From positions 248,001 to 312,000 of the forward strand of contig NIVC01000494.1 in the NCBI GenBank assembly GCA_002269645.1: DNA of 64,000 nucleotides, written 5' to 3'. This DNA comes from Macrostomum lignano. Lineage: Eukaryota. The translations under genes and the position numbers were made by a program. The notes beneath the pieces are model-generated. The model was not told the DNA's origin. It saw only the letters and a list, made by a program, of their open reading frames with translations, and did no database searches. This document shows positions 7,020 to 60,100 of the stretch, piece after piece. Position 1 is the stretch's first letter. Every line of letters starts with the position of its first letter.

Positions 7020-7236
7020 ACTAAAGATATTTATAAATAAATAAGTATATATATATATAAGTAAAACATGTAACAAATTTCTTTATTAATATATTTCAAT
7101 GTATTGATTTATTGTCCCAGAACTAAAATGATTTTTTTAATTTTTTATAATAAAAAAATTATAAAACTAATTATATATAATGTATTTTGACTTTAAAATT
7201 AGTAGCATCTAGCTTAAGAGGAATAAAAGGTTATTA

Positions 7237-7809
7237 TAGCCTAGTGATTAAAGTGTTGGACTTACAACATGAAAAGTTGGATGATCCCTAATCATACATG
7301 CGCAACCCCCCTGATTTACACTGGCTATGCAACTTACTTTTTGACCAAAAATGCAACTTACTTGTGAAAAAAACCCTAAAGCAAAATGAATGCAATTTTG
7401 GGTAAACAGCAAGAGTAACTATGACTGTCTTATCAGGCCTAAATGCCTCCGCAACTAATTAGTACTACATCTGTATTTTTGGAGTGGCATTTTTGCAACT
7501 TACCCCTGGTCCACCACAATTTATGGTAGCTAGATCGGCCAGGTTAGCCAGCAGTTGCGCATGTATGTCCCTAATCCCACTGAAACAATTTGTGTCCTTG
7601 AGCAAGACACTTAACTTTATATTACTTCAGTTCACCCAGCTGAAAAATGGGTGCCAGCATTAGCTGGGGAAATTGAAGGTGTGTGGCAACCCCCCAGTCC
7701 TTGTACTAAACAGCCATATGTAGCCTTCAGATATGCTGCACAATAGCTGCAACTGAGCTGTTGGTTGCCATCTGGCCCAATGGGGGCAGGTGTAATCAGT
7801 TACTATTAA

Positions 7810-7855
<46 letters not shown>
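7237..7855 (+). mobile_element. tRNA-derived SINE (CORE-like body, (ATT)n tail) interrupted by a MITE
   Basis: Head tagcctagtgattaaag at ~7237. The body after 7575 (ccttgagcaagacacttaac...cccagctgaaaaatggg...caggtgtaatca) matches the copies at 21.8, 33.8 and 61.1 kb. (att)n tail at 7810-7855. Confidence 0.75.
7293..7567. mobile_element. 275-bp MITE, 14-bp perfect TIR (catacatgcgcaac), 8-bp TSD (hAT/P-sized)
   Basis: TSD tccctaat at 7285-7292 and 7568-7575. Internal sequence is related to 39500-39750. Confidence 0.85.
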
Positions 7856-7926
7856 GATTTTGGAAGTTTCATCATATTTCAAAAAAATTTCACTCTACTG
7901 CATGCTCCATAGTAAACTGCCACACT

Positions 7927-29883: not shown

Positions 29884-42345
<12,462 letters not shown>

Positions 42346-43968
42346 AATTAAAAATCTGTAGACTATAGTTATAAGATAGAAATTTCCTTGTGATGAGTTA
42401 GTTATTCTAAGCCGAGTCAGTCAAGTTGTAACTGTTATTCTGTTAAGTGAGGCCTTCTCAACTGCGCTCTTCTGTTTCTTGTCTCTTTTGAAGCGCTTGC
42501 CTTTTGAAAAGAATGAGAGTGAAGGGTCAGTCAGTCACTCACTGTCCTTCACTCTGGCTAAAGCCCGTTCACTCGCAGAGTAAAGGAAGATAGGATGACG
42601 GTTTAATTATAATTGACGAGAGCTTGCGGAGTCGGGGTCAGTAAAGAGAGATACGAGACGCGGAGTAGGGAGGTTTGGAAGAGGGGTTGGGGTAGGTTGG
42701 ACTGCGGAGGGAGGGGGGGGGCTGATGGCCAACCAAGCTCACTGCTGCTCCAGTCCAGACTGTCAAAATTTGGCGTGGGCACGACGGGACGGGTCGTAAT
42801 AAAACGTCAAATAAATTTATACACAGTCACGGCAGACTTGGCAGAGCGGCAATTGCTATTGCTAAACGGAGCTTGAGCAGGGGGGGGGCTTGCCTTGCAA
42901 TGCAAAAGAGAATGAATGAATGAATGAAAGAGCGATCTTTCTTTTTAATAACTCGGTTCTGCTCTCTTTGTGAACAGAGCGGCAAGCGGGTGGAGAGGGT
43001 GGGTGCTGACTGCCGTTGCTGGTTGGCTAAATAACAAAAGTGGCAGCTCTCAAAGGAAAATTATACCTATGCAACAAACACCAAGGCAGCTAAGCGGATT
43101 CTTCTGACTTCTTGAAGTTGTGCCGCCGTCTTTTGTAGGTTTGGATTGGGTTGGATTGACTGCCAACGCCAAGCCTGTCTCTTTAGTCTTTACGGTTCTC
43201 AGACTGGCAGCTTAAAGCTGACTGCAGGTTTAGTTATGCCGGTGGCCCGTATATTATAATTGGTTTCCTCCTTGTGGGTGGCACAGTGGCAGGCACAAAA
43301 TCTCTCTTGTTTCGTCTGGACCCGGACCCCGGTTGGGGTTGGGAGAGTGCGCCAGCCGGGCATTGGAGGGTCCGGGGTCCCTTCTTTACCCCCACCTCAC
43401 TCCCCGGGGGTTGAGGCGGTTGAAAAAGTCACACAATCGCAAGTTAAACCTCAGCGGGGGGCATATTATCTCTACCTATAAAAATCAAAACTCTGTGTGT
43501 CTGTCTGTGTGTGGACAATTTTTAGGTTATATAGCATAGTATGAATAATAGTCCAAGTATACTTAATTGACGTTAGTACAAAACCACTACAACAAAGCTT
43601 ACAGGACACCGGTTACATTACATTTTTTACTTCAAACTCAAGACATTTAGAGAATTTAGAGAATAACAGAAATACGCTGACTAGACTAAATGTTAAATGC
43701 TTTCGAAGAATTTCTTTTCGAAGCGTTGGCTACCACTTTTATATTCTAAGCAAGCTACTAATAAAAAAACCATGCTGATACCCCCTTTGTATTTTAATAC
43801 AAAATATTCAAACGCATATTCCGAAATACAAACTACTATAAGTAGACCGTAAAGACCACAACTTTTATTAGGCATTTAATCCGCTGCTGCAGATCACTTT
43901 GTGTTTGTATTCATTAAGGGAATTAAGAAAGGATAATTAGAAACAAGAAGTCGACAATCTGAACGCGT

Positions 43969-44330
43969 AGTAGTAGGAAAGTGGTACCCTCTACCGCCAT
44001 CGCACCGGATTGGCCGGGGCACCCGGCCAATGAGGAGAGACGGCGCCCCCAAAAACGCCCACCCCGACGCCAAACCCACCCCGACCCCCAAACCCACCCC
44101 GACCCAAACCCACCACCGCCACGCACCCAATCCCGACCCCCAAACCCACCCCGACCCCGGCCAAACCCACCACCGCCACGCACCCACCCCGACCCCAAAC
44201 CGGGCCCCCAAAGACGCCCACCCGACCCCAAACCCACCACCGCCGCACCTACCTCCGACCCCAAACCGGGCCCCCTCCTGTCCTGCACCCCATCCCATAC
44301 CAAGGCCCCTTCCTGTCCAGCACACCATCC
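43969..44330 (+). repeat. Left terminal inverted repeat
   Basis: Reverse complement of ~55400-55865, with differences in internal repeat copy number. Confidence 0.9.
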
Positions 44331-44594
44331 CATACCGGAGGCCGGAGAAGGGGGTCGGGCAAGCCCAGGTTGGGGTCGGGCAAGCCGGTCGGGCAAGCCG
44401 GTCGAGCAGGCCAGATGAGGGGTTGGGCAGCTGAGTGTCTGGGTGAGTGTCCAAGGGTGAGTTAAGTGAGTGTTCAAGGGTGAGTTTTGAGATGTGAATG
44501 AGTGTCCATAGTTGAGTATCCTCTACCGCATGTGGTGATACGCAAGACAGAGTTTCAATGTGATCTTAACGGGTAGAGGGTCTGATTGCTTGGA

Positions 44595-44757
44595 ATTTCC
44601 GAGTAGAGAGGGGAAGGGATTCTATTGGTCGAGCAAGCATTTGAAGTGATTTCCGAGTAAAATGTGGAGAATGGATTCTATTGGTCGAGAGGTCCCTGAT
44701 GAACGATTTGGTTTGGACCCTGCGGGAGAAGGGCTCCAGTACCCTTTATAAATAAAG
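44595..44757 (+). promoter_or_regulatory. Putative pPolB promoter: duplicated module with inverted CCAAT boxes plus TATA
   Basis: atttccgagta at 44595 and 44649; ggattctattggtcgag at 44617 and 44673; tataaataaag at 44747, ~70 bp before the ATG at 44815. Confidence 0.45.
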
Positions 44758-44814
44758 CACCTCGGCCCCATATATTTTTTTTTTATTTTAGATTAAATTA
44801 AAAATACAACGAAA

Positions 44815-45590
44815 ATGCAAATAACTTGCGACTTTTGCGAGTCATCAGTAATCGGGGGCATTGAGGAGCACTATGCGGTATGGCCTGCGATACCAGCACT
44901 GTTTGAGTCAGATGACTCCCCAGCGATTCATTTTCAACTGATCAAGGAGGCGTTTAATGGCAGGTCCCAACTTTACCGGGCCAGTGCATGCGGCGACCCG
45001 ATGAATGTTTTGGAAAACACTCGTCAAGCTTTCATTGACTTGATCACCCAGCATCAACGTGAGCCAGGAACCGCCATCAAAGTTCAGCTGCGCCTCGGGG
45101 TCCTGATGCAGCGCATCATTAATGGTAGCTGCGCCGCCGAGAACACTGCCTGGTTTGCTGCCAAGGTCCACTCTCTTCTCCAGAGTGAGGAGGAGTACTA
45201 CTTCTCTGACGACATGCAGACTATCCTCAACCGGATAGAGAAGTAACTACGCAATGGCAGTGGCTGGGTAATCAGGACCACTCGGTGTGTTGACGTGTCA
45301 ACCGCAAGTTATTATCTACCGCATAGAGCGTCGTGCAAAAGGCCAAGAATGAGTTCAAGAAAGACTGCAACAAGCTGCTAAACAACTCCCTGTAGACCAT
45401 CGAGTATGTTCGCAAGCAAGTGGACTACGTGCTGGTTTATTCAGCAGGGAAGCCTGTGGCCCAGCCGACGTTCCGCGATCAGATGATTTTCAACGGGGAT
45501 TTAGCTCTAGTGCACATTCTCAAGACGAATGTTGTGCTCGACAGGCTAGTGTATATCGGCCAGTGCGATCTGTCTGGACACTAGCAAGCT
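44815..45590 (+). pseudogene. Collapsed protein-primed family B DNA polymerase (pPolB)
   Basis: N-terminal region ...KVQLRLGVLMQR...TAWF...ILNRIEK*LRNGSGWVI is typical of the Maverick pPolB N-terminus, with a TAA at 45244. It is joined directly to a motif-B segment AKNEFKKDCNKLLNNSL*TIEYVRKQVD...QPTF...VVLDRLVYIG. Exonuclease, motif A and motif C were not found. Confidence 0.8.
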
Positions 45591-46200
45591 CTTTTTCCCA
45601 CAAATTTTTTTTCTTTGTAAATATCTGATTTAAAACAACTATATGCATGTAAATTTAATACGAACATACTATATTTTGAATAATAATAAATACAAGCTTT
45701 ACTCTATGATATCTAATACGCAGAAATAGAGAAAAATGCTCTTTCACAAAAATATTTTTGCTATAATTAGTCATTTTTTGTGCACAGCTCTGGGGTAAAA
45801 TCCCCATTGAAATGTATGTATTTTATCCACAAGTATGCAAGTTTTCGTCCAGTGATTAAAAGTATGCAATACGGCGTGAATTTTTCGACAAAATGCGTCA
45901 ATTTTCATGCACAGGTTCGGGTACAAATCCCTATTGAAATACATGTATTTTGTGCACAAGTATGCAAGTTTTCGTGCACAGTGTTAAAAAGTATGCAAAG
46001 TGTTGAGGTTTTTTGTGCACACATTCGGGTAAAAATTCCCATTGAAATGTATGTATTTTGTGCAAACATGCATGCTTTTTCGCGCACAACAGAGGCTAGA
46101 AACGCTAAATCCGCAGAAACTGGTGGGGGTGGGCTGTTATTTTTTTTTTTCAAGCAGGTGTTTGGCATAAGAAAATGATAGGTACTAGAAATTTGGTAAA

Positions 46201-47419
46201 ATGAAAAAGAAAAAGGCAATTTCAAACCTTCTGCCAGGTATTTATTTTGACTGCAGTAGACCGGGCAGCTATGGCGGCTATCAGGCATTAAAACGAGAGT
46301 TGCACAAACAGCACGGACCCAAGTTTAGTGTAGGGCAGGTATGTATATACGATATACTTCTAAACCAATTATTTTTTAGAAAATTCCAGCTTAGGTTTTT
46401 AGTTTTATCCACTAGCTAGCAATTTCCAGTTTTTACAATTAAAGGTAAAAACGTGGCTCCAAGACCAAGATGTCTACACACTGCATAGAGATAAACGCAA
46501 AAACTTTCGTCGAGCACCGATTGTGGTGCGGGGCATGGATGACCAGTGGGAACTGGACCTGGTTGAAATGCTACCGTTTGCCAAGTACAATGGCGGCGTA
46601 CGATATATTTTATGCTGCATTGATGTGCTCAGCAAGTTTGCCTGGGCTCAGCCGGTGCGCCGCAAGACAGCCGAGGAGGTTGCAGCCGGATTCGAAGCGA
46701 TCCTAAATCGAGCTCACCCTCGATGCCCACGAGCAGTTCGGACCGACCGTGGAAAAGAGTTTTGTAACACCCAGTTCCGAGCCTTCTGCGTAAACCACAA
46801 AATTCATGCATTCACATCAAGTAGTGACCAGAAATGCGCAGTCATTGAGAGATGGAACCGCACACTGAAATCCCGAATGTGGCGGTACTTCCGTCACAAG
46901 TCAACATTAACCTGGACCGATGTGCTTCAACCCTTAGCAAAGGCATACAACCAGAGTATTCATCGGAGTATTCAAAGCCGACCAGTTGATGTCGACAAGT
47001 CAAACGAGATGGAAATTTGGCACCGGCTTTACGATGGGAAGCTTCCTGAGACTCGTGAAAAGGTCTCCAGACCAAAGTTCAAGGCAGGAATGATGGTGCG
47101 AATCTCTCTTCGCAATCTGGCCAACCCATTCACCAAGGGATACACAAGGGGATGGAGTGAGGAAGTATTTGAAGTCAAGTCCCTCCACCCCAAGCATTAT
47201 CCATACATGTACACTCTGATCGATGCCCGAGGTGAAGAGTTGGAAGGCAAGTTTTACGAGCCGGAAATGCAGCAAGTGACAGGAAACAAGAAGCTGTGGA
47301 TCATCGACAAGGTTCTCAACATTAAGAAGCTGAAGAGTGGAAAGATTCGGTATTTGGTTCAGTGGCGCGATTCAGAAAAACCCAGTTGGATTGACGAAAA
47401 AGACTTAAGAAAAATATGA
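46201..47419 (+). CDS. RVE-family (DDE) integrase with C-terminal chromodomain-like region; exons 46201-46338 and 46445-47419, ~370 aa
   Basis: IYFDCSRPGSYGG...|VKTWLQDQDVYTLH; WELDLVEM, TDRGKEF and VIERWNRTLK catalytic motifs; C-terminal IDKVL...RYLVQWRDSEKPSWI. Confidence 0.9.
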
Positions 47420-48198
47420 AAAGGCAAAGATTTCAGGTAATGTCCGGCCCCGATGATGACCCGGCCAACTTTACTGCTGAGCTGCTGCATCCTGTGCTGC
47501 TGGATTCTGCTTTGGACTATGAGTTGGGTCTGCTTGGAATCAGTTTTATCAACTGCATCTACACGATCCCTCATCCATTGTCGCTATATTATCAGCTTGA
47601 GGGTTCAATGCAATGTGCTGAAATTCCAGCTGGGCGCTACAATGACTTGAATGAGCTGATTGATGCAGTAAATGCTTTACTGATTGTAAAAGATTTTGAT
47701 GAGTCTGGAATTGGCGAAACACCTATAAATGTGCATCTAATTAAATTTACCCTTGATTCAGTTAGCCATTATGTATACTATCAAATGGCTGGGATCTGTG
47801 AGAGATTTATGTTTCCAGAAAACAGCCAGATGGGGAAAATCTTTGGTGCTGCGCAGACAACCTATAGCGAGCAGGCAGGATGCTTTGAACGACCTGGCAT
47901 GAACCCGGCCTGGAATACGGATTTGCTGCTTGTTGAGTGCGATCAGATTAGCCCGCGCTGTATTGGAAATCAGTTTACTCCAGCACTGCAGACTTTGAAT
48001 ATTGGTGGTCTTTTGCAGGATCACCGGTCGGAACTCATCTATAAGAATAAGCTGTTCTTCCCAATAGCAGCAAACCACCGCTTAACACACATGCAAATAC
48101 GGCTACGACCGATCAACTGTATCGAATCTATCCGATTACTCTTTGGACCCACAGTCTTGACTTTTGAGCTGCGTGAGTCATGGACATTCGACAAGTGA
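47416..48198 (+). CDS. Probable minor capsid (penton-like) protein, 260 aa
   Basis: ANFTAELLHPVLLDSALDYELGLLGI resembles the Polinton mCP N-terminus; position between integrase and MCP. Confidence 0.65.
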   Translation: MKRQRFQVMSGPDDDPANFTAELLHPVLLDSALDYELGLLGISFINCIYTIPHPLSLYYQLEGSMQCAEIPAGRYNDLNELIDAVNALLIVKDFDESGIGETPINVHLIKFTLDSVSHYVYYQMAGICERFMFPENSQMGKIFGAAQTTYSEQAGCFERPGMNPAWNTDLLLVECDQISPRCIGNQFTPALQTLNIGGLLQDHRSELIYKNKLFFPIAANHRLTHMQIRLRPINCIESIRLLFGPTVLTFELRESWTFDK

Positions 48199-48443
48199 CC
48201 GAGTTTTATCGAGGCAGTTGCTTCAAACTTCCTCATGGGCACGGATATCCCACATCGCTGCTATCTCGACTGCCCCCTGAGACTCATGAAAATGCAGTTC
48301 TCCTTTCCCGCATACCACCTCCATCGCAGAAAAAACATAAGAAAACGCCAAAAATCAAACCAAAGAAGAGCAAGCCAGTGCCCACAAAAAAGCGCAAGAT
48401 ACCGTTAAAAACAGTCAACCGAGTGCTCGATTCACTCTCATAA
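48180..48443 (+). CDS. Small basic protein (87 aa), candidate virion core/DNA-condensing protein
   Basis: Lys/Pro-rich C-half; fills the gap exactly and overlaps the MCP start (TAATG). Confidence 0.45.
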   Translation: MDIRQVTEFYRGSCFKLPHGHGYPTSLLSRLPPETHENAVLLSRIPPPSQKKHKKTPKIKPKKSKPVPTKKRKIPLKTVNRVLDSLS

Positions 48444-49713
48444 TGTATCGGACAAATCCACGGCTCAATCTGTTTGAGCCAATGACGCATGAAATTGGAG
48501 TGGATAGGTCTCACTTCACGGACTTTCATCCCATCGGCAGTCTCACGACTCCTGATGCACCGATTGAATTCGACTGCCACGCCTCCTCTGAGGACTACAC
48601 CGATCTGCACGCCACAGTGCTGCAAGTCACTTGCCGGATAACTCGTGTGATAAACAATGCAGAGCTGACTAATGAAGATGATGCCCATGTCGGACTATCG
48701 AATCTCCCGCTTGCCAGCCTGTTTCGTGATGTCACTGTAAAACTCAACCAGCGGGTTGTGAGTGGTGGGGACCAGCTCTACCCATATCGAGCAATGCTTC
48801 AAGTGCTGACCAGCAGCAATGCCAACCAGCTTCAAGAACTGGCGGCCGCAGGTTATTATCCAGACACCGCTGGAGAGAGTGACACCATTGGGGAGCAAAA
48901 TCATGGATTCACAAATCGTGCGAGATTGCATGAGGCTTCTGCTGTTGTGCAATATGCCGGCCCGTTGTTTTCAGACATTTTCTCAATCCGGCAGTATCTG
49001 CTAAACCAAATCAGCCTGCAGGTCAAATTGACCCGGCATTGCAGCGCTTTTTCGTTGATGGTACCCAATAATGGAGTTCAATATCGTATTGAAGTCGACA
49101 ATGCTATTCTGCTTTTGAGGCGTCTCCGAGTAAACCCAACAGTGGCTCTCGCACATGAACAGGGGCTCTCACAGCGTAATGCTCTCTACCACTTTGATAG
49201 AAGAGAGCTTCAGACATTCACATTTTCTGTTGGGACAAGAAACAAGAGTCTCGATTCAATCACGCATGGTCAGCTGCCAAAATTTGTGCTCCTTGGAATG
49301 GTCAGCCAGACTGCTTTCAATGGATCTCTGCACCACAACCCGTTTTGGTTCCAAGCATTTGGGTTGAATAGTTTAAGCCTGTTTGTCAATGGAGAGCCAA
49401 TTACTGGGCAGCCCATAGAACCACAGCAGCAGCACTCATCCGAATTTTTGCAGTTTGCCCGCAGTCTCGGTGGAAAATATTGCATAGCTTTGATGAATTT
49501 CGAAATAGTGCCTATCTGCTTGCGTTTGACCTTAGTCCAAGTGGCGATGAAGTAGGCAGCTGGTTTGGTCATAGGCAGGGTCAACTACGACTGGATATTC
49601 GCTTTTCCAACGCTCTCGCACAGCCAGTCACACTCATCTGCTTGTGCGTGTATGATTCATGCATGGAAATCACTAAAGAGAGGGATGTGCTGCTGGATTA
49701 TCGCAGAGCATGA
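48443..49713 (+). CDS. Major capsid protein (double jelly-roll), one frameshift near 49485
   Basis: FHPIGSL...PIEFDCHASSEDYTDL..TVLQVTCRI, SLFRDVTVKLN, YPYRA and LPKFVLLGMV. The C-terminus continues in another frame as SFDEFRNSAYLLAFDLSP...GQLRLDIRF...DSCMEITKERDVLLDY. Confidence 0.88.
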
Positions 49714-50183
49714 ATTCCGAAGAGTTGGAAGCGTTCATTTCTCGCTGCCCCACATCTGTGCGGGATGCCTATTGCGGAAATTTTACAGTTGGAACAGTGA
49801 CACCATTTTTCGATTCAACCTGCCGACCCTGCTGCTTCATTTTGTATGAGCCATGGAATGATGAGTGCGGTCACTGGATTGCTGGAGTAGTAACAAGTAA
49901 AGTGCATTGTGAAATTTTCAACTCTTTAGGAGGCTTGAGTAAAAATATGAAGAGCTGGTTAAAGAAAACTAAACCGACGCGGATGGTGCTGCAATGGAAT
50001 ACGGTCCCTGTTCAGCCCAGTTCGTCAACTCTATGCGGCTGGTATTGCATTTTTTACTTGATCCATCGACTACATAAGAGAATGTCATATAATGCCTTGT
50101 TCATCAAGGTTTTGCACCCGGCAGCTGTGGCTCAAAACGATGCAATCATACTCAGACTCAAAAATCAGTTGCAAGGTGTTTGA
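49710..50183 (+). CDS. Adenain-like cysteine protease, 157 aa
   Basis: GHWIAG (His), IFNSLG and VQPSSSTLCGWYCIFYL (Gln...Cys). Confidence 0.88.
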   Translation: MNSEELEAFISRCPTSVRDAYCGNFTVGTVTPFFDSTCRPCCFILYEPWNDECGHWIAGVVTSKVHCEIFNSLGGLSKNMKSWLKKTKPTRMVLQWNTVPVQPSSSTLCGWYCIFYLIHRLHKRMSYNALFIKVLHPAAVAQNDAIILRLKNQLQGV

Positions 50184-50798
50184 TTCCAGACTGCGGATGG
50201 GAGGCTGCATGATGGTTTCGGGCCCTTCTCGAGCGGGAAAATCAACATTCTGTTTGCGGTTGCTGTCCCAACGACTGCTTTGTTCGACCAACCTCCCAAG
50301 CGGATGATTTGGTATCACGGATGCCCGCAGCCGGAACTCCACGCGACTCTGCGGCGGCTAGGAGTGCAAGTATGTGAAGGATTATCGAATTTGGATCTGC
50401 AGCCCCATGACCTGATTGTGATTGACGATTTACTGGATGAAGCAGCTGCAAGTCGAGAGCTACGACATCTGTTCACCCGTGAGGCCCACCACAAGCCCTG
50501 CTTTGTCATTCTCATCACGCAAAATCTATTTTTCAAAGGCAGAGAGTGGCGCACAATTAGCATAAATTGCACCTACATTGTGTTGTTCAACAACCCCAGA
50601 GACGCCTCTGCGGTCCAAGCTTTAAGTCAGCAATGCTTTCCCAAACGGCGCACTCTGCTAGTAGAACTGATGGATCGATTGGTGCGAGATGGAGATCAGC
50701 GCTATCTGCTGCTTGATTTTCACCCCGCTTCGCCCCATGAACTGCGCCTGAGAGCCAATTTTCTCCCCGATGAGGCCCCGCAGCGAGTTTATCTATAA
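50140..50798 (+). CDS. A32/FtsK-like packaging ATPase, one frameshift near 50275
   Basis: Walker A GPSRAGKS (frame from ATG 50140); Walker B LIVIDD and FTREAHH...ITQNLF...RTISINCTYIVLFNNPRD (frame from 50280). Confidence 0.9.
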
Positions 50799-50828
50799 GA
50801 ATGGCTCAGTATCTGCACTGAGTTAAAC

Positions 50829-51161
50829 ATGGATAAACACATTGCACTAATAACTGTCTTTTGTGAGGGCACTATATCCTTGCGTCGCTGCATACTTACC
50901 TATGCAAATAAAAGCACCATTTGCTTTTTGGTTGAGTGTATTATAAATCTACTAGCAGGAAAAGTTTGTTGTGAAGATAGCTTGAAGCGGAGACTCAGGC
51001 GATATCGAAATACTCTCCGGCTTGTTGCACAAAGCAAAAGTGTGAAAGAGGCTCGGCGCAATCTCTCACACCCGCATATCCTTCGTTGTCTTCCTCTGAT
51101 TCTCACCTGTATAAAAAGACATGTACAAGGAAATGATACTGGTACCCCGGTTGCAGTATGA
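50829..51161 (+). CDS. Conserved small Polinton-type ORF (110 aa), function unknown
   Basis: ICFLVECIINLLAGKV...LKRRLRRYRNTLR resembles an ORF pattern I associate with Mavericks; located in the co-oriented block. Confidence 0.55.
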   Translation: MDKHIALITVFCEGTISLRRCILTYANKSTICFLVECIINLLAGKVCCEDSLKRRLRRYRNTLRLVAQSKSVKEARRNLSHPHILRCLPLILTCIKRHVQGNDTGTPVAV

Positions 51162-51717
51162 GGCACTTGTGAATCAGAGGGGCATGGAGACAGTCTGTGA
51201 ACCCGAGCTAGAGGCGGAAAAACAGTTGCGCAAGATTAGGGACGAGCGTTGCGTGCAGCAGCTGCAGGCAAGTGCGACCCAAGAACAGCCTCCAGTAATT
51301 CACAAAGAACCGCAGTGGAAGGAGGTTTTATATCTGACGGTGAATCAGAAATGGCATCATCGTCTGCAGGCATTGATTAGCTTCATAACCGTAAAGTGCA
51401 AGTCGATTAGCATAGATGATACGTATGAAGTTTCTGTCAATGGTAAACCGTTGTACAACTCAAATATCGTGGACCTGCTGTATTTCATAGTTAAAGATAC
51501 GTACTCTAAGTATCTTCAGCCACCGAATGGGATTAATGAGTTTGTTACGTGTCTTCAAGAAAACCACGTGCCTCTGTCTGCAGTTGGTCTGAACACTACA
51601 AAATTGCTGGAAAAGCCTCGGGAAGAAAAGTCCAGTCCTAAAAAACCTCGACTGCAAGGCTATAAGAAGACTCAGTCTCAGAAAGGATACGGCAAGTGGA
51701 TCAAGTGGCCAAGATGA
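51121..51717 (+). CDS. Conserved Polinton-type ORF (198 aa), function unknown
   Basis: VNGKPLYNSNIVDLL...PPNGINEFVTCLQENHVP pattern; the stop overlaps the next ATG. Confidence 0.55.
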   Translation: MYKEMILVPRLQYEALVNQRGMETVCEPELEAEKQLRKIRDERCVQQLQASATQEQPPVIHKEPQWKEVLYLTVNQKWHHRLQALISFITVKCKSISIDDTYEVSVNGKPLYNSNIVDLLYFIVKDTYSKYLQPPNGINEFVTCLQENHVPLSAVGLNTTKLLEKPREEKSSPKKPRLQGYKKTQSQKGYGKWIKWPR

Positions 51718-52229
51718 TTGTCATTGATTTTGAAGGATTTCCGCACCTCTACAAAACAGAGGACTTTGTGATTAAGGAAATTGCATGGGTTGAGTTTGCA
51801 TGCGGTCAAACGACGGCTCATTACTATTGCTACCAGCCGCCGCACAGCTTTGAGCTCTTTGATCGAGGACAGCGACGAACCTGCTACTGGCTCACCAATA
51901 AGCGGCACGGTCTAGACTGGGACAGGAGTGGGTTCCGACCCTACTCTTGTCTCTGGAGCGATATCTCCCACTTGCAAGGCCCGATATTCAGCAAGGGGGA
52001 TGTCAAGTGCCAGTTCCTGTCGCGTCTGCTGCTACAGCCTGTCTACGACCTCGCACACCTGGCCTTTCCGAGTGCCTCGAAGTACGTGCTACCCTGCGCC
52101 CTGGCCAAGGTGGCGCTGTACGCTGATTGGCTGCGGCCTCGCGGCTACGGGTCTATAAAAGTAGCGATCTGCAGCAGGCACTGGCATTTCTCTCGATTGT
52201 CTGGTTTTGTCTCGCATAGAGACGCCTAA
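51714..52229 (+). CDS. DEDD/DnaQ-like 3'-5' exonuclease
   Basis: MIVIDFEGF (ExoI DxE), FVIKEIA, HGLDW, IFSKG and CALAKV. Confidence 0.65.
   Translation: MIVIDFEGFPHLYKTEDFVIKEIAWVEFACGQTTAHYYCYQPPHSFELFDRGQRRTCYWLTNKRHGLDWDRSGFRPYSCLWSDISHLQGPIFSKGDVKCQFLSRLLLQPVYDLAHLAFPSASKYVLPCALAKVALYADWLRPRGYGSIKVAICSRHWHFSRLSGFVSHRDA
52154..52202 (+). promoter_or_regulatory. TATA box plus initiator-like leader
   Basis: TATAAAAG at 52154-52161; CATT with A at 52186 (32 nt downstream). The leader aggcactggcatttctctcgattgtct is repeated exactly at 53063-53089. Confidence 0.5.
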
Positions 52230-53093
52230 CCGCAGTCACTTCTGTGAAACTTGTCTCTGCCTGGCTGAAAGCTTGTAATGAGTGAGTAGGCTGGGTTGGA
52301 GGGTAATAGTGGATCGGGAGGGGCTGTGGGTAGCTGTATAGGAAGGCAGGCCTATACCTGTACCAAGGTGCTCTGACGGTATCCCTCAGGCGCCCTCTGA
52401 GCGTACAGCCAGCGACCCTATTAAAGCTGGAGTGTGCCAGAACCAGGACTGAGTCTGAGCAGGACGGGACCGTTGGCACGGTCACAATAGAAATGGCGGG
52501 TTGGCGAAGCAAAGGGTGAAACAGTCCCGGCGATTAGCCCTCCTGCCGCTTCAAAGATAAGAGACTGTCTGTTGGCAAGAGTACCCGGGGTCTAGTTGGG
52601 GGGGGAGGCTCCTTCGGGTTGCCACGGCCGTGGGGGGCGGTCAAATGACCGGCATTGGCTTAACTAACCCAGGAGTAGGCACGGGCTTCCCTGAATGGTT
52701 CACTCAACCCCCTCTGGCCCCGGGGAGGTTTTTGATTTGTACCCGGGGTGGTGGGCGGTCGGCCCCAGCATGGTTGCCACGGCTCTAGGCCTTCGGGCCA
52801 TCTCTAATAGGCTTTGGGGGCCTTCTAACCTGGTTTTTTGGGCACGGGCTTCCTGACTGGTTCGTCGAACCGCTGTCACTGTCCCCCGGGGAGGTTTGGT
52901 TTTTCTGATACTGCCCTGTACAGTCCTCTATAGTCTAATTTGGCTTTTAGTGTACATGAGTACACTCCCAATCTGGAATCTAAATTATCTCTAGTGGCGT
53001 AAGAGCCTTTTTACTTAGGCTGAGGCGCCGGAAGTACTTATCATAGTCATAGTCATAGTCATAGGCACTGGCATTTCTCTCGATTGTCTAAAG

Positions 53094-53744
53094 ATGGCCG
53101 CAACAATTCGCGTAACAAACATCGTGACAGGAGCCGACCTGGCGACCCGGGTGGGTCTGCCACAACTAGCGAATTTCCTGACTCTTCATCTGCCTCAGTA
53201 TCACACAATCCGCCATCGCCTGGTTCATCCTCGAACACTGGCTGTGGTGATGAAGAGCGGGCAGCATCGAGTAACCGCGCTGGTGTATCCGACCGGACAA
53301 GTGTCTGTCTGTGGAGCCAAAAGCATGGAGGAAGCTCTCGTAGAGACAGAGAAGATTGTGAAGCTGTGTGCAGACTTCTTGCGATTGACCAGTCTGCCCC
53401 AGATTCGCATCAAGACTATTACCTCTGTGACGACCTTTCCCGCGGGTCGGCATCCACTCCGGTTGGGGGAAGTCAAGTCTAAATGGCCGCATCGGGCCAC
53501 CTACGAGCCGGAAATGTTTAACGGACTTGTGCTCGAGTTTACTGCTTCTGTAAAGTTGATTTTGTTTCATTCATATCGCTGTATAATAGCTGGTGCTCGC
53601 AGCGTGGTTGAGGCTCAGACTGCAGCTGATGCCCTCTCCCGCATTTTGCATGCAGACCAAGCATCCGAACCTACTTTGCTGGACTCTGACTCAGCTCCTC
53701 TACGGCATAACAGTAGTAGTGAGATCTGCCTATGCACCGAGTAA
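53094..53744 (+). CDS. Divergent TATA-binding protein (TBP)-like protein, 216 aa
   Basis: Two TBP-like repeats: VTNIVTGADL...AVVMK...TALVYPTGQVSVCGAKS and ...TYEPEMFNGLVL...KLILFHSYRCIIAGARS. Compare TBP QNIVAT, TALIFASGKMVVTGAKS and SYEPELFPGLIY...LLIFVSGKIVLTGAK. Confidence 0.82.
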   Translation: MAATIRVTNIVTGADLATRVGLPQLANFLTLHLPQYHTIRHRLVHPRTLAVVMKSGQHRVTALVYPTGQVSVCGAKSMEEALVETEKIVKLCADFLRLTSLPQIRIKTITSVTTFPAGRHPLRLGEVKSKWPHRATYEPEMFNGLVLEFTASVKLILFHSYRCIIAGARSVVEAQTAADALSRILHADQASEPTLLDSDSAPLRHNSSSEICLCTE

Positions 53745-54130
53745 TAATAATAATAATAATAATAATATTTTTGCTGTAACTTTACTTCTGTATTTCTTTT
53801 GTGTACAAAAGATAAGAAAAAATAAACGCGAATGCAACTATGTTTGTGCAACAATGCTTACAAAAATGAAACGTTTTTTTTTTGTTTATTTTATTGGCAG
53901 GTCCATGGATTGCTAAGCATAAAATTACATGTTAAAAGCTCCTATTAGCACAAAAAAAGTTTATGAAGAATGGAAGGGCAGTATTAAGGCCTGTCACGTG
54001 TATTTACAAAACAGGTATTATCGCAAGAAATTAAAGCATCATGGGGCAATATTATAGCCAGTATTGACAAAGCAGTATATACAACAGTGCATGATCAGTA
54101 CTATGGTTCAAAACTATATTAAAAAAAAAG

Positions 54131-54826
54131 TTACTTGACGAAATGACCAGTTGTCGCTTCATGCATTGCGCGTCGCTTCATTGGTGGCTGGTGGCATGAA
54201 GGCTGTTGGTTCTTCTCAGCTGTTGATGGCTCTTCCAGAGTTTCGGATGCAAATCTCTTTCTAAATTCAGCCTGAACTGCCTGGAAAGCCTCCCAGTGGT
54301 CGTCCCACTCTGCCGGCTGCCTGTCAGGTACTTGTATAAGTTGGTCGAGTGTAAGCCTTGCTGCCCATGCTGCACACTCTTCAGGCTCCGTAGGGTGGTA
54401 TCCCATCCACCATGGATCGCCGATCGGTGGCTTGACCGGAGGTTCTCGCTTGTCAATTTTGTCTAGGACCCAATGCTTTTGAGCCCAGACTTCGCGCCAA
54501 AGTTTTGTAGGAAGCGGTAAGGCGTGCCTTAGGTGCACCGGCGGTCCGAGTACAGTTGGAAGGCGCCAGAGTGTGATTACGCCATTTTGCACAACCACTT
54601 GCCTGTTGCCACCCAGAAGGCATTGCGCATCGATACACTTTCTTGCAAACTCTTCCAGTCGTTCCTTCAGGCTGCCCAAGTGGCAAAACTGGTGGACGGT
54701 GAGCTCCATGCCAGGCAGACCTGGTCGATACTCTTCATCAAATTTGTACCACTTTCTGATGCTGATGCACTTCGAGTGCGACCTGACGCCGATTCGAAAT
54801 CTGTTCGATAATGTCTTGAAGTTCAT
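54131..54826 (-). CDS. PC4 (Sub1/p15)-like ssDNA-binding/coactivator domain protein, ~231 aa
   Basis: N-terminus FKTLSNRFRIGV...ISIRKWYKFDEEYRPGLPGMELTVHQFCHL fits the PC4 pattern (vdIRe.Y....kPgkKGIsLt.eQw..L). TATATAA ~45 nt upstream of the ATG on the minus strand. Confidence 0.65.
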   Translation of the reverse strand: MNFKTLSNRFRIGVRSHSKCISIRKWYKFDEEYRPGLPGMELTVHQFCHLGSLKERLEEFARKCIDAQCLLGGNRQVVVQNGVITLWRLPTVLGPPVHLRHALPLPTKLWREVWAQKHWVLDKIDKREPPVKPPIGDPWWMGYHPTEPEECAAWAARLTLDQLIQVPDRQPAEWDDHWEAFQAVQAEFRKRFASETLEEPSTAEKNQQPSCHQPPMKRRAMHEATTGHFVK

Positions 54827-55399
54827 TTTGTTCACTGTGAGCTTTCCTTCCGGCTGTGTGCGAGATTATATACGACGAGAGTTGGTAAGTAACACCAGCT
54901 CCCGCTCCATCGCAATAACCAATCCGAACCCCGAATCCAACCCCACACAACAGCCCTCTCGCAGGAACTCTCGGCAAATCAGGAGCCCTTCCGGGGACCA
55001 CTCAGCCATTTAGAAACCAGCTCCTGTTCCATAGCAATAACTAATCCGAACCCCAAATCCAACCCCCACACAGCAGCCCTTTCGCAGGAACTCGGGCCTC
55101 AACAAAGTCTCAGCCATCAACGTAACAGGAGGTGGCGGGACCTTCTTGCGGCCCTCTGGCCGCCAAGAAGTAGCGTTCTAGGTCTAACGACCTCACGCTG
55201 TACCCGCCACAGCAAGATACAGTACAACCAAAGCATGGAATGAGGGTTTTGCCTTGGCTAGCTTTAAAGGCGGTAAGTGAGACAGGTAATAAGACTTGGG
55301 TTTAGGAATTAGGAGGGGGGAATTGGTTTTGGTTAGGGTACAGGATAGAAGGACCTTGCTACATGGGATGGGGCAAGGCGTAGGATAGGAGGGGGCCTT

Positions 55400-55865
55400 G
55401 GTATGGGATGCATGGGGTGCAGGACAGGAGGGGGTCTTGGTATGGGATGCACGGGGTGCAGGACAGGAGGGGTGTAGGACAGGAGGGGGTCTTGGTATGG
55501 GATGCATGGGGTGCAGGACAGGAGGGGGTCTTGGTATGGGATGCACGGGGTGCAGGACAGGAGGGGGTCTTGGTATGAGATGCACGGGGTGCAGGACAGG
55601 AGGGGTCTTGGTATGGGATGCACGGGGTGCAGGACAGGAGGGGTGTAGGACAGGAGGGGGCCTGGTTTGGGGTCGGGGTGGGTGCGTGGGTTTGGGGTCG
55701 GGATTGGGTGCGTGGCGGTGGTGGGTTTGGGGTCGGGGTGGGTTTGGGGGTCGGGGTGGGTTTGGCGTCGTGGTGGGCGTCTTCGGGGCGCCCTCTCCCC
55801 TCATTGGCCGGGTGCCCCGGCCAATCCCGTGCGATGGCGGTAGAGGGTACCACTTTCCTACTACT
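55400..55865 (-). repeat. Right terminal inverted repeat with expanded internal tandem units
   Basis: Multiple cttggtatgggatgcacggggtgcaggacaggagggggt units, versus about 1-2 in the left TIR. Confidence 0.88.
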
Positions 55866-57114
55866 ACGCGTATTAACCACCTGCGTGAGTTTAAGCACAC
55901 AACAGAATTTTATGCAACGGCTGCTCTTGATGCAAGCAAATGTTTAGTTTTCAATGGACATTTATTTATCAAAGGTAACATAAAAGTGAAACAAATTAAA
56001 CAAACAGTCAATTTTTTTCTAATTTTATTTTCGACACAAAAATACATTTAGATCAAATGGTTTTTATTGTATATGCATAAGAATAATTAACACATACCTG
56101 CTCTATGTATTACCTTCTTAGCTAATCGGCAGACATTGAAAGGTGAACACACCAAGGCGGCAACAAACTTCAAACTAAATTAGCCGGGAAAAGCAAAGTA
56201 AGACTTGTAAGACAAAGCAATTGCTCAGCTAGTGCAGCCAGTAGAAAAAGCGCATATAGCACGTAACTAAGCGCATGAAAGCTAGAGAGAGAGATGAGAC
56301 CGCGCCTCACGGGTCAGCAGATTAAGGAATGAGCTAAATCTATAATTAGCCAATGAATCAACAACTAAAATTTTGATTTCTCACTATATTATTAATAAAG
56401 CAAAATGGTAGAAACACTCAAAGCTTAGTAATGATTACATCCGATTGGAATGGCCAAAATGCCTTGAATAAATTTTTACATATTATAAGAATAATTAAAG
56501 GAACAAAACTGTGTATTTAAATAAATAAAATAGAATAAAACAAACTAATTACAGGTGCAAAGCAAGCAAAAATGTCAGACAACAACACAATTCCCAAAGA
56601 AGAGTCAAAATCAACACAGCGATAATTTTTCTCCACAGAATCAAACACAGACAGTTGATTGGTTGCCTCAGATTCGGACACGCGGCACAAGTTGAGAGGC
56701 AACAAGTCGTACAGCAAAGAAAAAAAACAGAAACTGCAACAACAGTTCCACTAATCAAGGTAATTATTAGTAAGTTTTTTTTATAAGTCCGATTCTGCAA
56801 ACAAGGAAAGAAAAGACACACGTTACGTAACTTTCATTATATTGAAGTTGTACCTTCTTGTATATACTACTTACTTGCTTAGTAGATCGAATTTCTTTGG
56901 CTTTAACCGTCTATTTATACTACTTAGTTCAACGAGTAATAAGTAGGGTGAACGATTACAATTCTTGAAACAGTTGACGCTGTTAAGCAGGCATGAACTG
57001 GATGTAAATATTAAATAACTAATTATTGTGGCCATATATTAATTAGTAGAAAAAAAATTACACACTGAGCTGCTATTACAATCAATATAGTCATAATTAT
57101 GAATAGTTATTAAA

Positions 57115-60100
57115 TCACTGATTGTGATGATTGTGTCGATGACTTCGGCTGGAGCTTCTTCGCCTAGATTTGTGATGCGAGGATTTCCGTTTGTGCCGCT
57201 TGTGATGGTTTTGGCGGCGACTGTGGTGGCGATCGTGCTGCTGGTGATGGTGACGCTTGCTGCGTTTCTGTGGGAAAAATTTAATGGAAAAATATCACAA
57301 CGGTAAAGCAGCTCAGCGCTTAACGCGTCTGACTGTTGCGCGTCAAGTCAGTGGGGCCACATTCAAGAAATTCGTGCACGGCATTTAGCGGATGCGCTGC
57401 ATAAGCGCGCAGTTGCATAAGCGCAGCAGTTGCATAAGCGCGCAGTTGCATTAGAGCACATTTGCATAAGCGCCAGTTGCATAAGCGCCAGTTGCATAAG
57501 CGCCAGTTGCATAAGCGCAGCAGTTGCATAAGCGCGCAGAGTAATAAGCCCGCAGTTGCATAAGCGCGCAGTGTGATAAGTGCACAGCTGCATAAGCGCA
57601 GCAGTTGCATAAGCGCGCAGTTGAATTAGAGCACATTTGCATAAGCGCAAATTTGCAAAAGCGCGCAGTGTAATAAGCACGCATTTGCATAAGCGCTAGT
57701 TGCATAAGCGCTAGTTGCATAAGCGCAAAATTGCAATAAACAATATAAACAATGTAGCAAATTTCAAGTTACCTTAGCGGTTTCCCGGTCGCTGCTACTA
57801 CTGATTTCGTCACTGTCGCTGTTGCAGTCTTCTTTGGCGCTATTGTGAGCACTGTGCGCTGCTGCGGCGGAAGCGGCGGCGGCGGTGGCCGCGGCTGCGG
57901 CGGGCCCGGAGCAGCATTCCACCCAGTCGTATTCAGACGAGGAAGGCGACGAAGAGGACTGGTCTTGGCTTGCTTTCCGCTTCAAGCTGGACGATTGTTG
58001 ATGCCGCTGCTGCTGCTGAGGCTCGGAGTTCGAAGCGGCTGGCAGCTGATACGACGGCGGCGGAGTCCGTGCCGACGCTCTAGCATCAACTGGCGCAGAT
58101 GCCGACGCCACGACTGACTTAGTAGGCTGCGGAGGCGTCAACTGCATCACGAGTTGTTGCTTTTGCTGTTGCTGCTGCTGCTGCAGAGGAACCGGGACAC
58201 AGCTGAACTTGTTGCCCTCAACCTTGTGTATTTTCAATCGAATACAAGTGGACGACGGCGACGCGGCGGCAGAGGCGGACGAATGAGACGGCGACTGGGA
58301 AGGACTGCCGTAGCTAACTAATAACTCACTGTTGCCAGACTGAGCTGCTGCAGCCTGAGCTGTCGAATCGCTTGTAGAACCGTTGTTGCTCTTTGAAGAA
58401 TAGCAACTAGAGTTGACATTGCGAGCGGACATGAACTGTAACAGGTCGGTTTTGCTGCCACTACTGGTGCTGCTACCGCTGCTAACTGATCCGTTGCCAT
58501 TGCAATTGCCATTGCTGGAGTTATTGCGCAGGACAAACACTGGACGCGGTGTAAACATCGGTCCAGACGATGTTGTCGACGTTATAGTGGACTGAATCGG
58601 ACTAGCGGCCGATGACACCAGCACGCGAATAGTGGAAGTGGACGGAATCGATCGAACGGCAGCCGTCTGGCTAGTCGGTATCGATGACACCGGTATCGGC
58701 GGAGCAGCAGCAATAGGCGGCGTCGGATGAGGCGCATCCACAGTGGACACGGGCCTGGCGCCGTTGCTACTATTGCTGTTATTGTTGACAAGAGCTGACA
58801 GGTCAGTCCGCCTGTAGAACAGAATATACGGGCAAGAGTTCAGCACCCGAGTCTCGCTGATTCGTTCAACCGAGGCATCGTTCAAGCACCACCAGGCTTC
58901 GTTGCGTTTAGCGTAGCAATAATAGTGCCCAAACTTGGTGCTGGCGCCGTGGTGTATGACCACGGAGTACAGGTCGTATTGCACTGGCCGGCCTCGCTTA
59001 GACATGAACGGACGCAGGTCCAGACTAAGCGGAAACTCAACAAACCGGCTAATCTTGCTGTTGTGACCCCATTGGAATCGGTTCAACTGGATAGTTAAGA
59101 TTGGCGGGCCAACAGCGATGCTGAAACTCTTCATAGCAGTCACTTTTGTGCGACATTTCTCGCATTTGTAAGCGTTGGAGTCTTTCAACAGATCGGCGGA
59201 TACAAACCGCTGCAGACAGTCGATCAAGTTGTTGCTGCTCTGGATGCACAGGCTTAGATCCATGAAATCGTCGAATGTCTGCGACTGGGCGCCGCATTTT
59301 GAGCAGAGTACGGACGATTTGAGCTTGCCACAGAATAGCACTCGGATTGGATTGGATGCGCGCCTGTTGGTTGCAAAAAAGCAGTAAATTTTATAAATTG
59401 CTCAGGTACCTAACGGTATTACTGCTCCCGCAACTTATCAGCAGGTATAGCTCGTATTATCGGGACACTGCTACTCATCACACAGGTACTTTTGACGGCC
59501 ACAACTCGGGTACTTTTGACAGGACACAGCTACTCATCAACCGGTATGTTTGACTGGACACACAGCTACTCATCAACCGGTATGTTTGGCAGGACACACA
59601 GCAACTCATCAACCGGTATGTTTGGTAGAACACACAGCTACTCATCAACCGGTATGTTTGACTGGACACACAGCTACTCATCAACCGGTATGTTTGACTG
59701 GACACACAGCTACTCATCAACCGGTATGTTTGACTGGACACACAGCTACTCATCAACCGGCATGTTTGGCAGGACACACAGCAACTCATCAACCGGTATG
59801 TTTGGTAGAACACACAGCTACTCATCAACCGGTATGTTTGGTAGAACACACAGCTACTCATCAACCGGTATGTTTGGCAGGACACACAGCTACTCATCAA
59901 CCGGTATGTTTGACAGGACACAGCTACTCATCAACCGGTATGTTTGGTAGAACACACAGCTACTGATCAACCGGAATGTTTGACTGGACACACAGCTACT
60001 CATCAACCGGTATGTTTGACAGGACACAGCTACTCATCAACCGGTATGTTTGGTAGAACACACAGGTACTCATCAACCGGTATGTTTGGTAGAACACACA

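Follow-up and report, generated by a model that had tools for sequence, protein, structure and literature searches.

Whether a small virus-like mobile element can bring its own factors for RNA polymerase II (Pol II) promoter recognition is the question raised by a Maverick/Polinton in the flatworm Macrostomum lignano. The element occupies positions 43969-55865 (11,897 bp) of the 64,000-nucleotide stretch analysed here (GCA_002269645.1, contig NIVC01000494.1, positions 248,001 to 312,000 of the forward strand; hereafter the window), and it carries two neighbouring genes, one for a TATA-binding protein (TBP)-like and one for a PC4-like protein, which an earlier note on this DNA had read as a possible private promoter-recognition system. 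To our knowledge, how Mavericks/Polintons control their own transcription is essentially unknown. The accessory regions of Mavericks have been left as "diverse ORFs" (open reading frames) (PMC8097293). Judged by sequence comparison, the two genes are conserved, selected cargo of a small Maverick clade found in M. lignano and in environmental samples, and we regard them as functional genes of the element because they are conserved in related elements under purifying selection. Their joint action as a private transcription module is only partly supported. The features that matter first are these:

53094-53744, + strand: TBP-like gene, 216 amino acids (aa)
54131-54826, - strand: PC4-like gene, 231 aa counted from the ATG shared with relatives
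53745-54130: intergenic stretch between the two 3' ends, containing (TAA)n and, for each of the convergent genes, AATAAA-type signals

As the earlier note had described, the two ORFs are uninterrupted, intronless and convergent, 386 bp apart, one encoding both TBP repeats and the other a PC4-type N-terminal domain, and neither gene belongs to the core Maverick set. They do not directly follow the structural block, as had been stated, and come instead after an ATPase-PM-PZ-X1 run. The PC4-like frame can be extended to a GTG at 54835 in the ORF listing; its relatives all start at the ATG.

The TBP-like protein is a divergent member of the TBP family

On its sequence, the TBP identity of the first protein is firm. 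It matches Pfam TBP (PF00352) in two stretches with E=5.8e-19 and 68.2 bits against a cut-off of 22.9, and all seven family members (7/7) match PF00352, which places the family within TBP by sequence. A profile built from the window protein and two relatives aligns to solved TBPs over positions 8-190 with E ~1e-11, covering both repeats. The single-sequence AlphaFold model is poor (mean predicted local distance difference test score, pLDDT, 53.6; global template-modelling score, TM, ~0.3); its top 40 PDB matches are all TBPs (prob ~1.0), and it shows the secondary-structure order S1-H1-S2-S5-H2 twice. The two TBP repeats lie within residues ~1-186, with no N-terminal domain ahead of the core and with a C-terminal tail of ~30 residues that has no counterpart in the relatives' proteins.

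Of the 18 columns with a conservation of 85% or more among 65 other TBPs, the window protein is identical at 15, including E-P-E-x-F and the second-repeat Phe. Columns E138, P139, E140, F142 and F158 are invariant in the seven members, E138-P139-E140 agreeing with the consensus of the 65 other TBPs, and the repeat-2 E-P-E-x-F stirrup, the second repeat-2 Phe and the repeat-1 Asn are kept in all family members. Cellular TBP kinks DNA with four phenylalanines, two per repeat, as seen in TBP-TATA structures; the E-P-E stirrup of its repeat 2 contacts TFIIB, and its first repeat is the TFIIA side. In the present family the second-repeat pair (F142, F158) is invariant and the first-repeat pair is changed, and the stirrup of repeat 1 holds a 7-residue insertion. 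From these features we infer a working saddle that would still be able to engage TFIIB and would read a different or asymmetric DNA element. By sequence, the family is a new compact branch, or sub-family, of the TBP family.

The same features would suit a decoy, that is, a protein that titrates TFIIB or other TBP partners or blocks host TATA boxes, dampening host transcription or silencing competing elements: the TFIIB-contacting E-P-E stirrup and the repeat-2 Phe pair are kept while repeat 1 is remodelled, and there is no N-terminal domain. We consider this improbable, since both repeats are kept across lineages at 34% identity, including the 15 of 18 core TBP columns, a conservation that argues for a complete working saddle. 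Furthermore, there is no sign of toxicity or host shut-off, and a germline-resident element gains little by harming host transcription.

The PC4-like protein has a predicted single-chain PC4 fold

The second protein matches Pfam PC4 (PF02229) with E=5.9e-5 at 22.9 bits, under the 25-bit cut-off, and six of the seven family members (the window protein and six database relatives at 38-55% identity) match PC4 as their sole family at E<=0.01. A profile of the family matches MoSub1, the Magnaporthe Sub1, with E=5.6e-4. An AlphaFold model from the 7-sequence alignment reaches block-mean pLDDT values of 80-92 over residues 1-93 and contains the four-strand sheet and helix of PC4 (E5-9, E13-18, E23-32, E35-46, H47-65); Foldseek aligns it to MoSub1 (4agh) with prob 1.0, TM 0.70 and a root-mean-square deviation (rmsd) of 1.7 Å over 65 columns at 28% identity. 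The PC4 identity is good but sub-threshold by sequence. Recovery of both folds, on which the earlier note had made its reading depend, was thus obtained, for TBP through PF00352, the profile and the top-40 PDB matches and for PC4 through MoSub1 (prob 1.0).

In the model, the first unit (residues 5-65) is followed in the same chain by a second beta-beta-beta-(beta)-alpha unit (residues 70-128), giving beta4-alpha twice within one chain; this second half-repeat rests on one model from seven sequences. Weaker Foldseek matches, over ~150 columns, are to Whirly and MRP1/2. Type I proteins such as Whirly and MRP1/2 hold the full PC4-like domain in one chain, and type II proteins, PC4 and a phage T5 homologue among them, form it as homodimers (PMC7549692). 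The N-terminal ~128 residues are predicted to be an intramolecular two-repeat (type I) PC4-like nucleic-acid-binding domain; the model does not call for the homodimer (type II) of PC4/Sub1 and would represent a new single-chain PC4-fold architecture. Behind the two-repeat PC4 fold (~1-128) come a variable Q/D/P-rich linker, a conserved W/P-rich C-terminal domain and a basic tail. This tail appears nuclear localization signal-like; its KRKR is common to the relatives and is weakened in the window protein. PC4 itself has an N-terminal regulatory region that is Ser/acidic and Lys-rich. That region is absent here, the fold beginning at residue ~5. Against a viral structure library the model gave weak matches to uncharacterised phage and giant-virus proteins (E >5e-3, high rmsd).

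Conservation in related elements

Word-indexed and exhaustive profile searches for relatives of the TBP-like protein returned 779 hits, of which those outside the following groups were ordinary TBPs; the family is very small.

Lineage A: the window protein, P0009 (~98% identity to it) and P0001, P0159 and P0002 (61-63%)
P0010: single protein, 45-48% identity to the window TBP-like protein
Lineage B: P0012, P0160 and P0161 (Logan) and P0162, P0016, P0163 and P0164 (annotated M. lignano proteins), 34-39%
P0094: single protein, in the clade by the neighbour-joining tree

P0009 (UniRef A0A1I8HX20, M. lignano) is identical to the window protein at 132 of 135 aligned residues of its TBP-like part. 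It is a chimeric model that joins PZ, X1, the TBP-like protein, the antisense of the PC4-like gene and an ABCC transporter, and it reveals a near-identical second copy, with both genes, at another M. lignano locus. By sequence comparison, this match makes M. lignano or a very close relative the most likely host; a vertebrate host, which the (AGT)2 ends and the gene order had suggested, was rejected because of it. P0016 is X1 fused to the TBP-like protein. In databases P0163 and P0164 are named TATA-box-binding protein, P0009 is an ABC transporter domain-containing protein, and the others are uncharacterised or hypothetical; exact-sequence look-ups of the window TBP-like and PC4-like proteins found no database record. 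These entries flag a problem in the M. lignano annotation, with chimeric gene models and with Maverick genes entered as host TBPs.

A neighbour-joining tree was built from 73 two-repeat TBP cores, a set without labelled TLF sequences. The TBP-like family is monophyletic in it, at a BLOSUM distance of 0.75-0.79 from all other sampled TBPs; the nearest outsiders that can be named are protist TBPs, and no affinity to animal TBPs appears among the 73 cores. Because the family forms its own clade, far from all others and nearest to protist TBPs, recent capture of a host TBP is not supported.

Gene order is kept along with the protein. X1 lies directly before the TBP-like gene in the related loci L001-L003 and L009; the order ATPase-PM-PZ-X1-TBP-like is found in L007/L008, and its PZ-X1-TBP-like part in L009. 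The M. lignano contigs L011/L012, which represent lineage B, a second Maverick lineage of this host at 34-37% identity, show MCP-PRO-ATPase-PM-PZ-X1-TBP-like (MCP, major capsid protein; PRO, protease) and then a convergent pPolB, the MCP-PRO part being seen in L012 and PZ-X1-TBP-like in L011. This synteny with X1, held across lineages down to 34% TBP identity within a protein identity range of 34-63%, is the strongest result of the analysis. Nei-Gojobori ratios of nonsynonymous to synonymous divergence (dN/dS) are 0.14-0.21 for the TBP-like and 0.16-0.34 for the PC4-like gene, values that are rough because dS is above 1 in most pairs, mostly >1.4, and saturated. Absence from relatives and dN/dS near 1, named earlier as grounds for doubt, were thus not found: relatives carry the genes, at dN/dS 0.14-0.34.

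These results bear on the possibility that both ORFs are functionless passenger copies of host genes, intact by chance. The copy is decayed, with TIR (terminal inverted repeat) arms that differ by 4-8%, two ORFs of ~650-700 bp could survive by chance, and Starrett et al. term such genes 'homologs of host proteins' (PMC8502044). Yet the synteny is kept across lineages at 34-63% protein identity, dN/dS is well below 1, the promoters are conserved, and the TBP-like family is a clade of its own with no affinity to animal TBPs, its nearest outsiders being assorted protist TBPs. The passenger explanation is largely refuted and has very little probability left.

A private transcription module?

The reading that we prefer, and to which we give an even chance, is that both belong to the conserved accessory set of a Maverick clade associated with flatworms, in which the TBP-like protein would nucleate Pol II complexes on element promoters and the PC4-like protein would be an optional helper that binds single strands or bubbles. 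Both small genes would first be transcribed from canonical promoters by the Pol II, TBP and NF-Y of the host. The TBP-like protein, with its repeat-2 Phe pair and E-P-E stirrup kept and its repeat 1 remodelled (stirrup insertion, one Phe lost), would then nucleate the assembly of Pol II initiation complexes at element promoters whose specificity is altered. Its presumed targets are the promoters of the long same-strand INT-capsid-protease-ATPase block (INT, integrase), and its action may be likened to that of herpesvirus TBP mimics on late genes. The PC4-like protein would bind melted or single-stranded DNA and could aid promoter opening, protein-primed strand-displacement replication, or both; it would be an optional partner, not an obligate one. 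The window copy is a decaying relic, and therefore any activity would come from intact relatives.

A stronger version, which we regard as tentative and rather doubtful, holds that a clade of animal Mavericks brings along a minimal set of Pol II initiation factors, in which a divergent TBP, possibly acting with X1 and in some lineages with a PC4-fold cofactor, redirects host Pol II to element-specific promoters. If true, this would be the first virus-specific pre-initiation system in Polinton/adenovirus-sized nuclear DNA elements, and, unlike the late-gene TBP mimic of herpesviruses to which it would be the parallel, it would be descended from a true TBP.

Besides the saturated dS, the sub-threshold PC4 match and the single model behind the second PC4-like half-repeat, several results weigh against the preferred reading. 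The first concern the pairing of the two genes. Both occur together in the window copy and in the P0009 copy. Pairing in an environmental sub-lineage follows by inference from two loci of one sample: read on opposite strands, the 300 bp that follow the TBP-like stop codon of L001 and the DNA behind the PC4-like stop codon of L005 show 89% identity. However, a six-frame profile search of L011/L012 detected no PC4-like gene over the 10 kb that follow the TBP-like gene, none lies within 0.9 kb downstream of it in L010, and in L004/L006 the PC4-like gene is convergent with pPolB, with no TBP-like gene within 2.5 kb and 1 kb, respectively. No contig with both genes was found outside M. lignano, all metagenome contigs being <4 kb. 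Co-occurrence of TBP and PC4 in other Mavericks was thus seen for the P0009 copy and, by inference, for L001/L005, and was not seen in lineage B, L010 and L004/L006. The pair is not obligate, and adjacency is found only in the window's lineage; the TBP-like gene with X1 is the constant, and the PC4-like gene is a separate, movable accessory gene.

This independence brings in another explanation, namely that the genes have separate tasks and came to lie side by side through an accident of layout, the TBP-like protein acting in transcription and the PC4-like protein as a single-strand-binding protein (SSB) in protein-primed, strand-displacement replication. Adenovirus DBP is a single-strand DNA-binding protein in replication of this kind. 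In its favour, the two genes occur independently in different lineages, the L004 PC4-like gene adjoins pPolB, their 3' ends facing each other (over this PC4-like/pPolB region L006 is a homologue of L004), and the Pfam scan of the element's ORFs offers no other SSB candidate. PC4-fold proteins bind single-stranded DNA, and for the phage T5 homologue a part in recombination-dependent replication has been described (PMC7549692). The best matches of the PC4-like protein in sequence and fold are to the transcription cofactor Sub1, but a PC4 fold fits a replication single-strand-binding role as well as a coactivator role (PMC7549692), which weakens the reading of the earlier note. The adjacency to PolB is weak as evidence, however, and lineage-B elements have an intact pPolB without a PC4-like gene in the stretches seen, so that the gene is not needed for replication of every relative. 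On balance we hold the replication role, with separate functions for the two genes, to be possible though somewhat unlikely.

The second set of results concerns the promoters:

52126-52161, + strand: TBP-like promoter, inverted CCAAT at 52126-52130 and TATAAAAG at 52154-52161, within the 3' end of X1
54865-54923, - strand: PC4-like promoter, TATATAAT at 54872-54865 and inverted CCAAT at 54923-54919

The same CCAAT/TATA arrangement stands ~55 bp upstream of the TBP-like ATG in L001, L002 and L009, and a TATA-like box is present in L007/L008. Inverted CCAAT, TATAAA(A/G)G and CACTGGCATT are found at equal spacing upstream of the TBP-like gene in the window, L001, L002 and L009; this conserved stretch also encodes the X1 C-terminus, and coding constraint therefore contributes. 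For the PC4-like gene, CCAAT and TATA occur at matching distance upstream in L004, L005 and L006. TATA-like boxes are indeed present where the earlier note had listed them, at 44747, 51110 (given as 51111), 52154 and 54872 (- strand), but their number is close to chance, with four TATAWAWR in the element against ~3 expected, so TATA is not enriched, and only the boxes at 52154 and 54872 are backed by conserved position in relatives. The conserved promoters look like ordinary host-type Pol II promoters (CCAAT plus TATA, as host TBP and NF-Y would use), and a distinctive motif that could mark target promoters of the TBP-like protein was not found. Because the promoters are host-type and TATA is not enriched, the listed boxes are no evidence for private recognition; by their promoters, each of the two genes resembles an "early-type" unit with transcription of its own, and neither looks like a target of a private system.

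Third, the DNA-binding face is altered: one repeat-1 Phe is replaced by Thr, Ile or Val, the other repeat-1 Phe by Tyr, and the repeat-2 Asn by Thr. These first-repeat and Asn changes could mean weak or no TATA binding. Finally, the window element is not the working unit that it had been taken for; it is a defective copy, without functional pPolB and with the TBP-like gene cut off from its TATA box. The proposal of a private promoter-recognition system thus keeps the conservation and selection of both genes on its side and has the host-type promoters, the lack of TATA enrichment and the non-obligate pairing against it.

Structure and decay of the element

The ends of the element identify it as a Maverick/Polinton, with the 6-bp target-site duplication (TSD) and TIRs of that class both present:

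43963-43968: left TSD, ACGCGT, directly flanking the element end
43969-44336: left TIR, starting AGTAGTAGG, with GC-rich tandem repeats inside
55380-55865: right TIR, ending CCTACTACT
55866-55871: right TSD, ACGCGT, directly flanking the element end

The element is thus bounded as previously described, with ACGCGT directly at both ends. The terminal 90 nt of the TIR arms are 96% complementary, with GC-rich tandem repeats beyond, and the ends are of the AGTAGT.../...ACTACT type. The + strand holds, in order, a pPolB remnant, integrase, penton-position ORF, PW-position ORF, MCP, protease, ATPase, PM, PZ, X1 and the TBP-like gene; the PC4-like gene lies on the - strand and adjoins the right TIR. 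The genes other than the TBP-like and PC4-like pair are as follows:

44815-45566, + strand: ORF X0 and pPolB remnants, the gene mostly deleted, two short remnants left
46201-47419, + strand: integrase, rve core PF00665 (E 4.9e-14), weak chromodomain (E 0.024)
47416-48198, + strand: minor capsid (penton)-position ORF, assigned by position in the conserved Maverick order (PMC8097293) alone
48180-48443, + strand: PW-position small ORF, by position alone
48443-49713, + strand: MCP gene, broken by one frameshift
49710-50183, + strand: cysteine protease, weak Peptidase_C48 (E 0.0085), 25% identity to the L012 homologue
50092-50798, + strand: packaging ATPase, broken by one frameshift that parts Walker A from the remainder
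50829-51161, + strand: PM-position ORF, match to L007 ORF 347-658 (E 4e-5)
51121-51717, + strand: PZ-position ORF, homologues in L007, L008, L009 and L012
51696-52229, + strand: X1, a conserved ORF just before the TBP-like gene in all relatives
52230-53093: spacer from X1 to the TBP-like ATG, one ~0.86 kb nested insertion

The window copy is a defective, non-autonomous, decaying relic. Of the pPolB expected in a Maverick/Polinton it retains two short remnants only, the first a weak match to residues 1-73 of the L011 PolB (E 0.006), the second 61% identical over 59 aa to the L004 PolB fragment (E 1e-15). ORF X0 (44815-45246, 143 aa) lies behind the TATAAATA box at 44747 and has no Pfam or database match. 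Its 3' third and the DNA after it give a weak tblastn match to the pPolB N-terminus; X0 as the pPolB N-terminus was rejected, a BLASTP comparison with the L011 PolB being not significant. The integrase is of the retrovirus (rve) type (PF00665, E 4.9e-14). Its N-terminal ORF (46201-46530) is in another frame than the core, and the AT-rich ~100 nt between them start with GT and end with AG, a frame change and GT...AG stretch that suggest a short intron. The capsid, protease and ATPase ORFs stand in the expected order and are homologous to L012, with weak Pfam support (C48, E 0.0085; P-loop). The two window MCP ORFs match one continuous L012 frame at 42% and 50% identity, and both ATPase parts, with P-loop hits in Pfam, likewise match one L012 frame, at 49% and 45%.

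X1, an ORF of ~150-177 aa, has homologues at L007 1356-1784, L009 560-1054 and L012 3032-3499. Neither Pfam nor PDB gave a match, also when a 4-sequence profile was used; X1 may be the real constant partner of the TBP-like protein. In relatives without the nested insertion, X1 and the TBP-like gene are ~10 bp apart. The insertion has a 26-bp direct duplication on its flanks and a hexamer microsatellite, (TCATAG)n, at its end and looks, from these sequence features, retroposon-type; no second copy lies in the window, and Rfam gave no match. The TBP-like ORF remains open but is parted from its own TATA box by this ~0.86 kb, and because the copy is degraded and the ORF cut off in this way, normal expression of the system is impossible from the window copy.

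Apparently intact polymerase genes are found in lineage B. The L011 pPolB (2401-5859, - strand) is an uninterrupted 1152-aa ORF (PF03175, E 2e-12) whose polymerase domain is preceded by a segment resembling Endonuclease_7 (PF02945, E 1e-5), and that of L012 (about 4834-8277, - strand) is 46% identical to it over 1163 aligned positions. The lineage-B pPolB is inverted relative to the window layout, and gene order therefore differs between lineages. The L004 ORF gave no PolB hit in Pfam or PDB and was confirmed instead by 47-53% identity to the L011/L012 PolBs. Beyond pPolB in lineage B lies an ORF with a Cys-rich N-terminus (L011 7563-8981 and L012 9690-10937, both - strand), which may be a further accessory gene; long repeats of low complexity come after the Cys-rich part.

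Elsewhere in the window, 1.9 kb beyond the right end of the element, there is an exon of a host ubiquitin-specific protease (UCH, E 4e-32; 57764-59341, - strand) that has a long tail rich in Ser, Ala and Gln. Long tandem and low-complexity tracts produce spurious ORFs in several frames (41600-42240, 2100-4200 and 35800-39100), the PQVIPVC-type repeats left of the element being one instance. An Rfam scan of the whole window gave no match, and no high-identity repeats common to the window and two M. lignano contigs were found, so that the host assignment by sequence comparison depends on P0009.

Comparison with known systems

Cellular TBP (PF00352) shares with the TBP-like protein the two tandem repeats, 15 of the 18 top-conserved columns, E-P-E-x-F and the repeat-2 Phe pair; the latter differs in being encoded by a mobile element, in lacking an N-terminal domain, in the 7-residue stirrup insertion and altered Phe/Asn residues, and in forming a separate clade. 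TBPL1/TRF2/TLF are short, core-only TBP paralogues with an altered DNA-binding face that serve specialised Pol II programmes. The present protein has the same short core-only form and no specific affinity to them in the tree, whose comparison set is without labelled TLF sequences. Similarly, the PC4-like protein shares with PC4/Sub1 the beta-beta-beta-beta-alpha unit and the IR-x-aromatic-aromatic and PG-x-x-G-x-x-L motifs, with MoSub1 as its best match, but differs in its predicted one-chain type I form as opposed to a type II homodimer, its extra C-terminal domain, the lack of an N-terminal Ser/Lys-rich region and a Pfam score below the cut-off.

Viruses with large genomes offer functional parallels. 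Giant viruses and African swine fever virus encode TBP-like proteins. The beta/gamma-herpesvirus TBP mimic ORF24/UL87 is nuclear and directs host Pol II at late promoters (PMC12529657), and poxvirus VITF-3 is a virus-encoded TBP homologue or mimic (PMC12917281). In each case the virus brings its own promoter-recognition factor, and the herpesvirus mechanism is the one proposed here. By their descriptions, those viruses have genomes >100 kb and a TBP likeness that lies mainly in the fold, whereas here a sequence-level TBP member resides in an element of 12-20 kb.

Closer in size are the MELD (Polinton-like) viruses of non-animal hosts, on whose maps Starrett et al. (2021) draw TBP homologues (PMC8502044, Fig. 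5 legend; bioRxiv 10.1101/697771). These are likewise small PolB-type virus-like elements with a TBP homologue, known from figure legends alone; they differ in their non-animal hosts, and a PC4-like partner is not listed. In our literature search, TBP was tied to Polintons/Mavericks only in the figure legends of this adintovirus paper (PMC8502044); no report of TBP-like or PC4-like genes in animal Mavericks, no paper linking Macrostomum with Mavericks and none linking PC4 with Polintons was found. The expectation that such genes are not standard in Polintons therefore agrees with the animal-Maverick literature, but it is tempered by the TBP homologues on the non-animal MELD maps (PMC8502044), which also weaken the reading of the earlier note.

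The architecture itself is that of vertebrate Mavericks as surveyed by Barreat and Katzourakis in 2021 (PMC8097293). Both have 6-bp TSDs, (AGT)2...(ACT)2 ends, which with the 6-bp TSD are the commonest vertebrate Maverick termini, and TIRs of a few hundred bp; both have int-mcp-pw-MCP-pro and atp-pm-pz gene runs and accessory regions beside the TIRs. The window element differs in its flatworm host, in having all core genes on one strand and in its extra X1 and TBP-like and PC4-like accessories, neither TBP nor PC4 being mentioned in that survey (PMC8097293). The window copy is also shorter, at 11,897 bp, than any intact element reported there (PMC8097293) because its pPolB is lost.

The elements described here are a Maverick clade with an unreported accessory set and not a new category, virus TBP homologues and sporadic Polinton-like TBP cargo being the precedents. 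What they add is a bona fide TBP paralogue that a Maverick clade carries down to 34% identity, still under selection. Basal transcription factors, a trait usually tied to giant viruses and herpesviruses, are thus possible even in nuclear virus-like elements of 12-20 kb, and expression, structure and distribution of this family offer a handle on early/late regulation in Mavericks.

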